A stretch of 64,000 nt of DNA from Callorhinchus milii (GCF_018977255.1 NW_024704748.1:20646001-20710000); one strand, 5' to 3'. Counted from the first letter of the stretch, positions 26,001 to 41,000 are shown. Notes: a model not told the origin generated them from the letters alone. Numbers and translations are program-made.

Positions 26001-29000
26001 TGGATAGTTATTTGAGTGTGCCTGATATTTTGCAAAGATAGCATGGCTTTCTGGTATTTTGATAGGTTTGTTCACAAGGTCAATTAAAAAAAACTGCTGA
26101 AAATATAGAAAAACAGTGTTGTTTTTCAGCATATATAGCAATATTTTCATTGCGATTATATCCCTTGACAACAAAATCAAAAGAAAAATATCAAAGTATT
26201 TCTTCAGGCTGTTCCGATGAGGTATCATTACAGCAAAGTGTAGGATCCAAGAACAGAAAAGTTGCCAATGTTAAACCTTCAAAGAACTTAACCTTTAAGG
26301 GGCCCTAGTCAAACGATATGGTTCACATAAGTTCTGCTCTGTGCTGTTCATTATTTATAGCACAATCTGGATCAAGCTGAACTTTGTAGCTTTCTCACTG
26401 AGAGGCGATATTATTTCTATGTTTCACATAGGGACTCACAATCCGATAGTTGCTGCCATTACTAAAACACTATCTGTGGGAGCAGTTTTAAGAGCTGAAA
26501 TGGTTGTGGTTCTAAATGTTGCAGCAATATTGCTATTAACATAATATCAAAACACTTCTCAGAGTATACTGTGAAATGAATTGATTGTAAATTGTGTGGG
26601 TGAAATGCGGCAGCCAATTGCACACAGCAATGTCCCACAAATAGTCGTGGATTATTGACATAGTCTTGAGAATGCTATCTAGAACCCAGATATCCTGAAA
26701 CAACATAGAATATGAAGCACCCAAGGATACAAAATAACCAAAGCTATACTCCCACTCCATTCAGCAATACAGAAGCCATTCAAGAACGAGGATGGCAGGG
26801 TGGCGGGATAGTCTATGTTAAACTTGAATGAAGATGAATACCTCACCTCACCTCAGTCGCTGACAACATCGCCATTCATGGATGCATTCTCCACCTCACT
26901 GAGCCCAGTACTGAACCTTGGTGTCTTTTGCCCGCCTTGGGTCAACTCTCCTCTCCTGCCGTCGAGACCCTCATCCATGCTTTCAATATATTGACTGTGC
27001 TAACTCCTTCCTCGCCGGACGTCCAAATTCTTCCTTCCACAAGCTGCAGATTATTCAGAACTCTACCACTTGTGTCCTCTTTCGTGCTAAGCTCGTCAGC
27101 CGATCACCCCAAATCTCTCCTGGCTCCATTGGCTCCGCATCCACCAGAGGATCGAGTTCAAGATTCTCATCCTCGCTTATAAAGCCCTCCACGGTCTTGC
27201 TCCTCTGCAACCTACTAAAATGTTGCCAACCTGTCCACACCCTACCTTCAGCAGGCACTAGCCTACTTCATGTCCCCTGCCCTTCCCTCTCCACCATCGG
27301 CGGTCGGTCATTCAGACTTTCCACACCTTCCTCTGGAACTCCATCCTGGAGCTCCTCTGCCTCGCCTCCTTTCCTCCCTCAAGGGCCAGCTCACGACCTT
27401 TCTCTTTGACTGTGCCTTCGGTTGTCCCCCTTGCCCTAAACCATGTAAGCTAACCAATTATATAATAATAATAATAATCCTTGCATTTGACATAGCGCTT
27501 TTCATGTCTTCTCGACATCTCAAAGCGGTTCACAGAATAGACTGTAAAGTGAATTGACCGTATATTTGTTTATATATTTATTATTATTTGTAATATATAT
27601 ATTACCCACAAATAAGTCTAGGATGGATTCTTTTCTTATTATTCAATACATATTGAATACACTTAATAGATTTGAATCTGACCCTCCTCACAGTGATGGA
27701 GTGGGGTAGTTTTAAATATGTATCACAACATGAATTAGATTCTAGAGCATAAATACATGTTCAGCAAGGTATCCATAAGATCCAGACTGAAGCTCTAAAC
27801 TGTTAAATTTTATAGGATGCTGTAAAACCTAATGTTGAGTGTTTTGTGTTTCACTCAGATTTACTTTTCCAAATTTAAATACACACCAATATGATTAACA
27901 ATACTTTTGTTCACTCAGGCTTGATGTACTGTGAAGACATCAGTAGCTTTGTAAACAAGGCAGAAGCGCATGCTGTGGGTCAAATTATCGAAAAGTTTGT
28001 CCACAAATGTGTACCGAATGCCACTGTGACTTTAACAGGAGGATTCAGAGGTGAGTAATATATCCAAACTATAATAAAATTACAGGAATTTAATAAGAAC
28101 TAGAGGTTCATATATGCTCAATAGGTCTTTTAATGTAATTTAGAAAAATGCTAACTTTAAACACAATTAAGTTGTTTTCAAGATGTATTGTAGAGCAATT
28201 GATTTCATTTGGCAATTTTTTAAAACGATGTAAAATGAATAATTCTCCACATCTTTTGTGTTTTGTTGGATTTTGATTGTTCCTGACATTTTTGGACTGT
28301 GCCAACCTTTTGGAAGGACTTCATTAGACATAGTTGTTCATATGAGAATATCAGAAAAACTGAATACTTCATTATAAATAATGCAGCATTTTGACTCCTA
28401 CAACCAATGCTGGATCTTGTTTTGCTAGTTTCTAACTTTGCTGAATTACTTAGAAGATGTACATCAGTCACTGCCAACTGGCAGTAGCAACCAAAACTGA
28501 TATTTTGTAAACTGAGCAAGACACTCAAGGTCTACTTTACAGCTTGAGTTAACAACACACAAGGAAAATTTGCAGGTTGGGTTAATCATGCACCACAGAA
28601 ACTTATAGCACAGAAGAAGGCTAATCAGCCCATTGTGTCTTTGATGGCTCTCTGTAAGATCTCTCCATTTAGTTCCATTCCCTCTTCCCCATACAATAAA
28701 ACATAGAAATGCATGACACAGTAAGATGCCATTAGTCCCATTGTTTGTGTCAGACTTCGCTTCTTCAAGATATCATTGATCACAATCCAAATTCCCCATG
28801 CTCTCTAATACCTTTCCTTTGCACTTGCTTGTCTAAATCTCTTTTAAATGTCACCAATTGACTAAGCTAATCCTGAAACAGGAAGCAACTGACATTTGTA
28901 TACCGCCTTTCATGTCGGGAGGACGTCTCAAGGCTCTGGACAGACAGAGTTTTGGACCTGAGCTGGGGGGCAGGGTGGGGGATGGGGGAGGGTGGAGGTC

Positions 29001-38000: not shown

Positions 38001-41000
38001 CTTATTCCCCTTTTATCATCATCTTAAACAGAATGTATTATATACTTACCAGTCAGTATACAAGAAGGGATATACAGATTTCAGCTTCTCACATTGAAAT
38101 TGTGTATTTTAACTTCTGAGTTTCCTTTTAATATTGATTGTTGGATTCTCCAGCCTCATTGTTTCTTTTTGCAAGAATTACTTTGCAATGTTACACCTTT
38201 TTTAACACCATTATAATTTAGTTCTTTTAGTTCCTTTCTTAAATAAAATCAAGACTTAGTCTGGAATTACTTTAGGTGTGTCAAAACAGTAGAATAAGAG
38301 CCTTCAACCACTAGTTTACTTCCCTCCTTAAATCATTCCGATCTATTTGTGTTTAAAGATTTCAGAGAAAATACAACTATCTGGAATTTAACTAGTATTC
38401 AAGATAATTTAGCACATTTGCAGAGCTGTTTCTATTGAACCTCATGAATACCCAAGAGTTAATCAGCACTCTTTAACTATGCTGTTCTGTTTGTTTCATC
38501 AGTTTAAGTTTCACTCATAACTAGTTTCGACCATTTTATTGTTAGGTTAATAATTTCATTAATTTGTTGTTTATTATTATGCTGCATGCAGAATTTTTTT
38601 ATGTCAAATTTGTCACAAGATATGAAAAAATACTTTTGATGCTTCAATAATCTGTTTTATAGCATTTTGGATTTGAAGATTTTTTTCAGCGTGTTACATT
38701 CATCTCTTGATCTGGCATTGTTTCATCGATGATCCACTATAATGTAACTTTTATTTGACATGTAATTATACGAAAAAAAAGTCATCTCATGTCTCATCTT
38801 GTACTATTTCAACTGTTTCATAGCTATCAAAAAAAAGTTCAAACTTCATTCTGGAGTTTGATTTATGTCTGATCTTGTGTTGGGTTGTACAGTTCATTAG
38901 ATGGTCTGAGAGATTTTGAAAGTTCTTCACTTGCTTTTGTCAGCATCTGTGCTTCAACAACAACAAATTTATACAGCGTCCTTCACGCAGGGTAGCATTG
39001 CGGAACTTCTCAGAGGTTCACCCCTTGTGAAGTATTGTATTAATCTGATTTGTTCTTTTAATTCCAATTTTAAATAAAATGTCAATGGTCACCAGAACAG
39101 CGCAATAGTTCCATTTTGAAATCTGATCACCTGGTCCATCAGTCACTTATGGCGACCAAAAATAGTTCTGTGAAGAATTCGAATTGCATTGATGGTGCTA
39201 AACTGCTCAGGTGGCCACAGCTAATGTATAAGCCAGTAAATGGAATTCCGAAGCTCATCTGTGGGTGGCAAAATGAGAGCAAAGGGTACACAAGACCATC
39301 CAATGAAAAGATGGAAAGTCTGGTGATGAAGCTTTATTGCTCAGTGATACATTGTCTGAAATGCTGAGATGTGCAGCATTCTATTACTTATCATTTCAGT
39401 GTTGTGGCATAGCATTTAGTGAATGTAGCATTTAGTGAATGCTGATATTCTTTAGGAGATAATAGAATCAGATTCACATCAGCTTGGAACATCTTGGATG
39501 TGTTCATCTGGGCAAAGGGCAAAGCTCTCCTTTTGTTCTGCAATGTCAGATTACTGTTGCTGTGCTCTACAGCTTTTCACCGTGTCAGTGATAAATTATC
39601 ACTTCATACAAAATCATGATTTAGACACAAAACCCCAGGTTTATCTTTCAAGAAATATTTGTCATTTCTTTTGAATCGTCATCTTAATAATGGTTGATTT
39701 CTCACTAATGCAATAACAAAAAGTGGAATGAGGTAGTAATTTTGCTGTGTCTAATGTTTTTATGCCCTGTAATTTTAACTTTATAATAATAATAATCCTG
39801 ACATTTGATGTAGCGCCTTATCACGTCTTCGAGACGTCTCAAAGCACTTCATAGAATATACTGTAAAGTGAATGAACTGTATATTTTGTGGGCAAAATGC
39901 GGCAACCAATTGTTCACAGCAGTGTCCCACAAACAGTTGTGGATTGAGTGACCAATTTATTTTTATTTATCTTGTATGAAATCCTGCGCATCCTATCCTA
40001 TGCAGTTCAAGTGGCTTTCAATGAATTGTCTATTAACTAACCAGGAATGTTAGTGAGTGTGATAGGTGTTTATCCAATGTATCCTCCTCCCTTTCTGTTC
40101 TAAAAAGATAAGGATCCTTATATTGCCATCTGTCTACACAGAGCAATTATATTTGAATGTCATTTGAGGTGGAAATTTAATTTTAATCTGAACAGAAATT
40201 CGGCGCGTGAGCTAGATTTATTGTACCTGATTTAAGAGCATTTTTATTTTACATCTTAGAAAGAATATTGTTTTTGTTATAAAGGACTAAAATTACATTT
40301 TCGGAGCCATCAGATTTTAGTTTCTCTATTTTCACAGAGGAAAGGAGATTGGCCATGATGTGGACTTTTTGATAACCTGCCCCGAGGAAGGGAAGGAAGA
40401 AGGAATTCTCCATAAAGCAGTCAGTCGGATGAACAATCAGGTAGTTACCACATAATAAAGCAGGAAAGAGATTCACACTATCACTTTCAACATTCAATAC
40501 TTTTTGTTCATCGATATAAATTGCACTATTTTCTGAAAACAGCAAAAAGCAGGAACTACTACAAGGTAAATATCAATCACAAATTACTCAAAAGTAACAA
40601 CCTAGCAGTGCCCTTAAAGGACTTTCAAGACCTGAACAATTTTGCTCTCCCATTCATCATCTGACCACGGTTAAGATAGTCCATTGCAGATAAGTCTATG
40701 AATAATGGATATATGATGAGTTGAAAAGGTTGAATAGGTCATAAGCCCTGAGACCAAAGAACAAGTGGTTCACAACCATTATCTGAACTCCAATATTAAA
40801 TTATAATTTCATGTTTTTTTAAAAATCTATACTTTTTAAGTTACATGTGGGAGTTTTGCAACATTTTCAGATTTGCATGAAGCAGCTGACAGTGCAGATC
40901 AGTTCCTGTGTGCAATATTAGTGAAGATTAACAATATTAAATTATTAATACATTTTCTGACACCTCATGCTTAAATCCCCAAAAGACAGATTAATGCATG

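Follow-up and report, generated by a model that had tools for sequence, protein, structure and literature searches.

A one-base deficit at the exon 7/8 junction of the elephant shark DNTT gene is most likely specific to the genome assembly

The 64,000-nucleotide stretch of elephant shark (Callorhinchus milii) DNA analysed here, referred to as the window, holds a gene that its sequence identifies as DNTT, encoding terminal deoxynucleotidyl transferase (TdT). With its 11 exons it is a normal and intact TdT gene, save for one base that is missing in this assembly where exon 7 meets exon 8. The deficit is most likely specific to the assembly, either a consensus error or the allele of one animal, and no feature of the species. 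A consensus error of one base is the reading that we favour, with a probability of about 0.8, and among the three readings offered in a preliminary description of this DNA (an assembly error, a null allele or a hypomorph) it is the assembly error that the evidence favours. A species-wide lesion is effectively excluded, since six protein models of C. milii are intact at this point, XP_007894584.1 from RefSeq and five isoforms from Ensembl/UniProt.

An exon model made independently of the preliminary description places exons 2–11 on the plus strand, every intron being GT-AG (Table 1), and exon 1 lies upstream, outside the window. The best database matches to the locus are all named DNA nucleotidylexotransferase. 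With mouse TdT the pieces before and after the break at exon 7/8 reach 191 and 217 bits, with Pol mu 155 and 143 bits, and the earlier naming of the gene holds for both pieces. They align end to end with mouse TdT (E 7e-56 and 2e-63), and the order BRCT, 8-kDa/HHH, fingers, palm and thumb is shared with mouse and human TdT (PDB 1KDH, 1JMS, 4I27; polymerase X family). GHDVD, RVDLV, Loop1 and the C-terminal EPWERNA are common to the window and mouse TdT, and the catalytic aspartates in GHDVDF (exon 8) and AIRVDLV (exon 9) align with mouse D343, D345 and D434. Unlike mouse TdT, the gene has an insert of 17–18 residues before the third catalytic aspartate, which is also present in sharks and rays. 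In a domain search of the separate pieces HHH_8, DNA_pol_lambd_f and DNA_pol_B_thumb were matched; the palm (PF14792) and BRCT were seen solely in full-length models of the locus, in the case of the palm because it straddles the break.

Table 1. Exons, splice sites and other features of DNTT, in positions of the window
Feature	Position	Strand	Remarks
Exon 2	1921..2095	+	BRCT part; first base completes a codon that begins in exon 1
Exon 3	13089..13205	+	
Exon 4	23913..24083	+	HHH_8 / 8-kDa domain
Exon 5	24767..24838	+	
Exon 6	25405..25528	+	Fingers, PF10391; phase 1 at end
Exon 7	27919..28050	+	132 nt; end is ACA GGA GGA TTC AGA G
Deficit stretch TTCAGAG	28044..28050	+	Compared with orthologues
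Normal donor, gtgagt	28051..28056	+	8/9 consensus positions; U1 duplex -12.4 kcal/mol
Second GT, gtaata	28055..28060	+	4 nt downstream; 4/9 consensus positions; U1 duplex -4.1 kcal/mol
Intron 7	28051..40337	+	12.3 kb; holds dispersed repeats and part of a LINE reverse transcriptase
Normal acceptor AG	40336..40337	+	ttttcacag before A; 13/17 pyrimidines upstream; C at -3
Second AG	40338..40339	+	Exon 8 would start at 40340; G at -3
Exon 8	40338..40440	+	A GGA AAG ... GHDVD; two catalytic Asp
Shifted-frame TGA	40370..40372	+	68 nt before the exon 8 donor
Exon 9	41682..41981	+	Loop1 and third catalytic Asp (RVDLV)
Optional intron in exon 9	41818-41868 or 41818-41871		
Exon 10	46287..46370	+	
Exon 11	59430..59516	+	End is ...EPWERNA TAA

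The last codons of exon 7 run directly into the donor, and exon 8 continues behind its acceptor with A GGA AAG GAG ATT GGC CAT GAT GTG GAC. Exons 2–11 total 1365 nt, and (1365-1) mod 3 = 2, so the reading frame is broken. When the normal sites are joined the frame shifts and a TGA is reached within exon 8, and nonsense-mediated decay would be expected, since this stop lies well upstream of the exon 8 donor and three exon junctions follow further downstream. The dNTP-binding motif GGFRRGK, with its two basic residues, cannot be read from the window through canonical splice sites. In the alignment to mouse TdT (PDB 1kdh_A) the first piece runs to chain residue 188 and the second resumes at 190, which implies that exactly one residue is missing, an Arg of this motif. 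Thus, in contrast to mouse TdT with its R335/R336, the assembled window cannot encode one of the two arginines with normal splice sites. All of this agrees with the preliminary description, in which the 132-nt exon 7 ending in TTC AGA G before gtgagt, the cag acceptor followed by A GGA AAG, the exon sum with its frame mismatch, the stop within exon 8 and the loss of a motif Arg had already been pointed out.

No other lesion was found: the ten exons are open, the catalytic GHDVD and RVDLV are in place, and conservation extends to Loop1 and the thumb. A unitary or old pseudogene was rejected, as there is a single one-base deficit, the remaining exons are open, the splice sites are canonical, the peptides are those of the older models and intact models exist for the species. 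As the deficit is inherent in the sequence, chance plays no part, and what matters is whether the animal really lacks the base.

A comparison with orthologues, suggested in the preliminary description, showed an exon 7 of 133 nt in bowfin (Amia), tinamou (Nothoprocta) and spadefoot toad (Spea), ending in CGA AG or AGA AG before the gt of the donor, and an exon 8 starting with A/G GGN AAR. At the deficit stretch the tinamou and the spadefoot toad read TTCAGAAG and the bowfin TTTCGAAG. The start of exon 8 is conserved in the elephant shark, and what differs is the end of exon 7, which in the conserved boundary supplies positions one and two of the second Arg codon. Among 127 retrieved homologues that cover the region the motif has RR in 125 and KR in one, the exception being the RefSeq elephant shark protein XP_042192593.1. 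In a survey of TdT orthologues, with 226 TdTs chosen for the tree, R336 and K338 were strictly conserved (PMC13050093). The DNTT loci of shark, skate and sturgeon are more than 100 kb each.

The protein models of the elephant shark itself disagree at the motif. XP_042192593.1, predicted on the assembly IMCB_Cmil_1.0, reads GGFRGEGK, and from exon 2 onward it equals the window exons exactly if exon 7 is ended at 28054. It was issued without a low-quality flag; set against its homologues, it is the sole one of the 127 with the motif in which the length of the motif has changed, and it depends on a very weak donor. This protein is probably wrong. The intact GGFRRGK is found in XP_007894584.1, again a model free of the LOW QUALITY tag, and in the isoforms A0A4W3JJY2, A0A4W3JX88, A0A4W3JXA8, A0A4W3JHA0 and A0A4W3JHB0. 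The peptides of exons 4–8, 10 and 11 in these six models are those of the window, bar the motif Arg and alternative splice choices, and the peptide of exon 2 is identical in the C. milii models P0121 and P0122. From the letters of the window GGFRRGK could be obtained only through an impossible intron with the ends GG..AC, which implies that the six models rest on DNA that differs at the site. We infer that their source was the older C. milii assembly 6.1.3 (Callorhinchus_milii-6.1.3, GCA_000165045), the DNA of which, judging from the protein models only, would carry the extra base. A lesion that belongs to the species, as the preliminary description had considered, is not compatible with these six models. 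When short open reading frames containing exon 7 were sought in a collection of 5.8 billion proteins none was found, and a query of 139 residues with the junction at its centre returned, from the same collection, other species and fragments of Pol mu, and no C. milii transcripts.

It is conceivable that the base is missing throughout the species and that TdT is nevertheless made, by way of an unusual splice site and with an altered dNTP-binding loop. All donor/acceptor pairs at most 50 nt from the exon 7/8 junction were enumerated. Two canonical GT-AG joins, and only two, stay in frame and retain the motif: the second AG, 2 nt into exon 8 (GGFRGK), and the second GT, where exon 7 ends in GTGA before GTAATA and is joined to the normal acceptor (GGFRGEGK). 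A misplaced boundary of exon 7 or exon 8 was rejected, as the enumeration gave no further canonical pair that keeps the motif. The preliminary description had the first of these joins right, the translation confirming that a start at 40340 restores the frame at the cost of one Arg, but it overlooked the second, which is the choice made by RefSeq. To the credit of such a rescue the RefSeq model bears no low-quality flag. The splice sites of both joins are, however, poor. The normal exon 7 donor is the strongest of nine DNTT donors, the other eight lying between -5.6 and -11.7 kcal/mol, and the second GT (-4.1 as compared to -12.4 kcal/mol, 4/9 as compared to 8/9 consensus positions) is weaker than each of them. 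All ten real DNTT acceptors have C or T at -3, and the second AG is a GAG immediately behind the consensus CAG, so that it is unlikely to give anything beyond a minor product, which speaks against the functional rescue proposed earlier. The window resembles the GTNNGT tandem donors in that GTGAGT has a second GT at +5/+6; compared with the NAGNAG tandem acceptors its CAGAG does have a second AG, but the two are 2 nt apart and not 3, and the second is GAG. In strength neither the donor nor the acceptor is what a tandem-site rescue would call for. With six models of the same species reading RR, and with a loop length that is unchanged in the 127 motif-bearing homologues save XP_042192593.1, a fixed deficit with splice rescue appears very improbable.

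A further way to reconcile the window with the intact models would be that the genome is correct and that the RR mRNA arises by non-canonical processing, either by splicing of an intron from 28050 to 40335 with the ends GG..AC or by recoding or editing. Joining 28049 to 40336 is the sole way to read GGFRRGK from the window, and it does so exactly. This match is what any aligner would produce for an mRNA whose exon 7 ends in AG when it is placed on a genome that is one base short, since the AG of the acceptor lends the missing letters. No class of spliceosomal introns with GG..AC ends is known, and no standard annotation pipeline would accept one. Splicing of this kind was rejected for that reason, and non-canonical processing as a whole is the most far-fetched of the explanations.

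The assembly error that we favour would have arisen by the loss of one base from the consensus in the last codons of exon 7, where the window has TTC AGA G before the gt and the orthologues end in AG. The true mRNA would then read TTC AGA AG joined to A GGA AAG, encoding the universal GGFRRGK, and GGFRGEGK would be a by-product of an annotation pipeline that picked a frame-preserving but weak downstream GT. Assembly pipelines of the RS-II/FALCON/Quiver/Pilon kind leave residual indels, and polishers such as Pilon do not alter heterozygous ones. The window is the same sequence as IMCB_Cmil_1.0 (GCA_018977255.1, project of WEZY00000000), and over 61.5 kb it shows no mismatch to MU249838.1. This assembly was made from 69x PacBio RS-II reads with FALCON 0.3.0, Quiver, one Pilon pass, HiRise and gap filling by PBJelly, and no polishing after PBJelly is described (PMC8302630 Supplementary Note 1; PMC12952989 Table 1). 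We found nothing specific in the literature on frameshift errors in IMCB_Cmil_1.0. The preliminary description had taken an N at 62176, the only one in the whole window, to make an error plausible, but it is no evidence on position 28050.

Against an error stand the approximately 100x PCR-free Illumina reads that were used in the polishing (PMC8302630 Supplementary Note 1), and the site itself, which lies in unique coding sequence where the run of A would be two bases long. A unique exon and a two-base run are atypical for a residual long-read indel, which makes a real, heterozygous deletion a serious rival. The base would in that case be missing in a private frameshift allele of the single sequenced male, heterozygous or homozygous, and caught in the primary haplotype. 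Quiver together with the Illumina polishing should have fixed a simple homozygous error in a unique exon, and the accessory (heterozygous) assembly amounts to 253 Mb, which suggests that the animal is appreciably heterozygous (PMC8302630 Supplementary Note 1). The intact models from the older assembly fit a private allele equally well, and since Tdt-deficient mice are viable such alleles can circulate. Set against this, the prior for a loss-of-function allele shown in the primary haplotype is by our own estimate about 0.1% per gene, and residual frameshift errors occur, by an estimate of the same kind, in at least 1% of genes in assemblies of the RS-II era; DNTT also shows no further sign of relaxed constraint. 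We therefore regard a private allele as unlikely. The accompanying idea that most transcripts take the strong donor and acceptor, reach the TGA and are degraded, leaving a null allele or nearly so, is equally tentative, and it is doubtful that the sequenced shark reveals a natural loss of function or severe hypomorph of TdT segregating in a holocephalan.

If the deletion were real, a wild cartilaginous fish would carry a natural null allele of TdT, with the site reading TTCAGAGGTGAGT, and a trickle of in-frame product might come from the second GT (GGFRGEGK) or the second AG (GGFRGK), with a remodelled dNTP-binding loop. Tdt knock-out mice are viable, and their V(D)J joints lack N nucleotides (Gilfillan et al. 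1993; Komori et al. 1993, both cited in PMC8061691). The same phenotype would be expected in the shark if the lesion is real and homozygous, but none of the present results shows an elephant shark without TdT activity, and a search of the literature on TdT or N additions in this species gave nothing specific. A real allele would be a modest curiosity and would leave the knowledge of TdT unchanged. The main value of the observation is as a data-quality flag on the RefSeq elephant shark TdT, XP_042192593.1, which has GGFRGEGK for the conserved GGFRRGK. Those for whom C. milii is the holocephalan reference in immune-gene evolution, or who search among TdT orthologues for enzymes for DNA synthesis, should work with the RR form or look at the reads beforehand. 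One enzyme-engineering paper gives C. milii TdT among what it expressed, with a sequence from UniProt.

Upstream of DNTT, outside the window and on the opposite strand, there is a gene with an SH2 domain, which may be BLNK, the neighbour of DNTT on the human map. Within the gene it was also possible to observe a true NAGNAG (acag/cag/AA), located inside exon 9.

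The window holds, on its + strand, ten coding exons (2-11) of a TdT-like gene, which were located roughly by tblastn and then bounded one by one by reading of the splice sites (table). All introns have GT-AG ends, and the expected frame is open in every exon. Exon 1 is seen some 2.5 kb before the window begins (around 2001-2210, + strand, of L001, the fetched GCA_018977255.1 DNTT locus), and beyond it, on the opposite strand and outside the window, is an SH2-domain gene (L001 1-3948), possibly BLNK as in the human map.

Coding exons of DNTT in the window
Feature	Position	Strand	Length (nt)
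DNTT exon 2	1921-2095	+	175
DNTT exon 3	13089-13205	+	117
DNTT exon 4	23913-24083	+	171
DNTT exon 5	24767-24838	+	72
DNTT exon 6	25405-25528	+	124
DNTT exon 7	27919-28050	+	132
DNTT exon 8	40338-40440	+	103
DNTT exon 9	41682-41981	+	300
DNTT exon 10	46287-46370	+	84
DNTT exon 11	59430-59516	+	87

The locus is the C. milii DNTT gene, already annotated. Searched separately against solved structures, the exons 4-7 and exons 8-11 pieces aligned to mouse TdT (chain 1kdh_A) at residues 23-188 (E 7e-56) and 190-363 (E 2e-63), with 191 and 217 bits as compared to 155 and 143 bits for Pol mu. Both catalytic motifs, GHDVD and RVDLV, are kept, as are Loop1 and the thumb, and exactly one residue is absent between the two pieces, one Arg of GGFRRGK (mouse R335/R336). 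R336 is a key active-site residue around the triphosphate of the incoming nucleotide (PMC13662279 Figure 2 legend; PMC12785651) and is reported to be strictly conserved among TdT orthologues (PMC13050093). When the in-frame translation through a +2 acceptor (exon 8 from 40340), free of stops and of added bases, was used as the homology query, Callorhinchus milii TdT models matched most closely; shark and ray proteins ranked next, with 66-74% identity. Where window and C. milii models share exons, their aligned sequences are identical. Domains, best match and catalytic residues are those of a TdT orthologue; what is lacking is confined to the two features that the missing base affects, namely RR in the motif and a length of 133 nt for exon 7. 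A pseudogene was also considered and rejected, the tests for one having come out negative.

The missing base is found where exon 7 meets exon 8. Exon 7 ends ACA GGA GGA TTC AGA G/gtgagt and exon 8 starts ttttcacag/A GGA AAG GAG ATT GGC CAT GAT GTG GAC, so that exon 7 leaves one codon base and exon 8 adds only one. The normal join gives [15 protein letters not shown] and then TGA at 40370-40372, 68 nt 5' of the exon 8 donor and with three junctions further downstream, and such a transcript would therefore be a substrate for nonsense-mediated decay. On re-reading of exons and junctions, the phase mismatch pointed out in the preliminary description held in every detail, as did its length sum (1365 nt for exons 2-11; (1365-1) mod 3 = 2). 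An N had also been taken there as a sign of assembly error; this single N, at 62176, lies 3' of the DNTT stop codon and is uninformative on the sequence quality at 28050.

In the DNTT loci of bowfin (Amia), tinamou (Nothoprocta) and spadefoot toad (Spea), exon 7 is 133 nt (3/3) and ends two bases into the second Arg codon: TTT CGA AG/gtaaga, TTC AGA AG/gtgagt and TTC AGA AG/gtattc, followed by exon 8 starts tag/A GGG AAG, tag/G GGT AAG and tag/A GGC AAA. The window, with TTC AGA G/gtgagt and cag/A GGA AAG, has the conserved exon 8 start and an exon 7 that is one base short inside TTCAGAG. The motif region is present in 127 of 133 retrieved proteins, with RR in 125 of these and KR in one, and the loop length is changed only in the RefSeq protein XP_042192593.1.

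This protein maps to GCA_018977255.1 (MU249838.1), and the locus fetched from there, which ends before the N at 62176, has 0 mismatches to the window over the shared 61.5 kb. It reads [16 protein letters not shown], with the motif GGFRGEGK, and is reproduced residue for residue, from exon 2 through the stop codon, by a +4 donor that extends exon 7 to 28054 (GTGA/GTAATA) together with the normal acceptor; the RefSeq pipeline thus preserved the frame through a second GT within the donor consensus. When all donors within 50 nt of 28050 were paired with all acceptors within 50 nt of 40338, the only canonical in-frame pairs keeping the motif were this one (28054 to 40338) and 28050 to 40340 (GGFRGK). 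The latter, the +2 acceptor, is the rescue proposed in the preliminary description and is indeed in frame; the +4 donor chosen by RefSeq had been overlooked.

The normal donor GAG/GTGAGT fits 8/9 consensus positions and, with a computed U1 duplex of -12.4 kcal/mol, ranks first among the nine donors of the gene. The +4 donor TGA/GTAATA fits 4/9, and at -4.1 kcal/mol is weaker than every real DNTT donor (-5.6 to -12.4 kcal/mol). The +2 acceptor is a GAG immediately after the consensus CAG, and position -3 is C or T in 10/10 real acceptors of the gene. Were the base truly missing, either rescue would yield a minor product at best. Given its exact fit to the weak second GT, and that it is the sole length change among the 127 proteins, GGFRGEGK in XP_042192593.1 is probably an artefactual motif that arose in annotation as a side effect of the one-base deficit.

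An intact motif, GGFRRGK within [14 protein letters not shown], is found in six other C. milii models: XP_007894584.1, an earlier RefSeq entry free of any LOW QUALITY flag, and the Ensembl/UniProt isoforms A0A4W3JJY2, JX88, JXA8, JHA0 and JHB0. Over the rest of exons 7 and 8 they encode the same peptides as the window. From the window this motif is obtained only by joining 28049 to 40336, a GG..AC intron. We know of no standard pipeline that emits such introns, and the UniProt accessions seem older than the 2021 assembly; we therefore infer that these models were built on the older Callorhinchus_milii-6.1.3 assembly and that its DNA holds the extra base. Intact models from a second assembly effectively exclude both a lesion and a splice rescue shared by the whole species. 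They are compatible both with a consensus error and with an allele private to the male that was sequenced.

We put the probability that the missing base is an assembly consensus error at about 0.8. In long-read assemblies of the RS-II era, frameshift indels remain in an estimated at least one percent of genes, which speaks for an error. The window's assembly, IMCB_Cmil_1.0 (GCA_018977255.1), was made from testis DNA of one male, with 69x PacBio RS-II reads assembled by FALCON 0.3.0, polished with Quiver and one Pilon pass (~100x Illumina), and then scaffolded with HiRise and gap-filled with PBJelly (PMC8302630 Supplementary Note 1; PMC12952989 Table 1). That the filling came later than the polishing was also counted for an error. 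The 100x Illumina polishing itself, the site being unique coding sequence with an A run of only two bases, and the fact that polishers do not touch heterozygous indels would fit a real frameshift allele of this male, but the chance that the primary haplotype shows a frameshift in this gene in this animal is estimated at ~0.1%, and such an allele seems unlikely. The small remainder falls to exotic readings. No C. milii fragments over exon 7 or the exon 7/8 junction were found in the protein collection. The deficit is best not counted as a genuine biological feature, and in practice the current C. milii RefSeq protein probably bears an artefactual GGFRGEGK; were the deletion real, one wild chimaera would carry a naturally occurring TdT null allele.

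Other splice variants were observed nearby. In older C. milii models an optional GT-AG intron is spliced within exon 9 (41818-41868 or 41818-41871, 51 or 54 nt); its tandem acceptor acag/cag/AA (NAGNAG) gives LVQNTEPERQ or LVQNKPERQ, and 17-18 residues of a cartilaginous-fish insert before the third catalytic Asp are taken out. In some Ensembl isoforms exon 8 stops short, at 40416 or 40419 (AAA/gcagtc or GCA/gtcagt), and exon 9 begins 18 nt early, at 41664 (ttgacag/GTACAT), which changes AVSRMNNQ to (A)VHSLPQ; shark and ray sequences align with AVSRMNNQ.

The introns also contain repeats. A SINE-like repeat with a tRNA head occurs in several copies, at 2353-2672 (-), 10523-10705 (-), 16449-16766 (+) and 49275-49484 (+), with Rfam tRNA matches at 2601-2672, 10640-10705 and 16449-16511; 2353-2607 and 16512-16766 are 98% complementary. 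Intron 7 (12.3 kb) holds a LINE fragment, an open stretch at 32164-32502 (+) matching Pfam RVT_1 (E 4e-7). A dispersed repeat at 14152-14962 (+) stays open over a long distance in two frames (244-256 codons), and no Pfam match was found for it; with its relatives at 9637-9879, 4256-4409, 29003-29485 and 53766-53888 (65-99% alike), it probably represents the tail of a LINE or SINE family.
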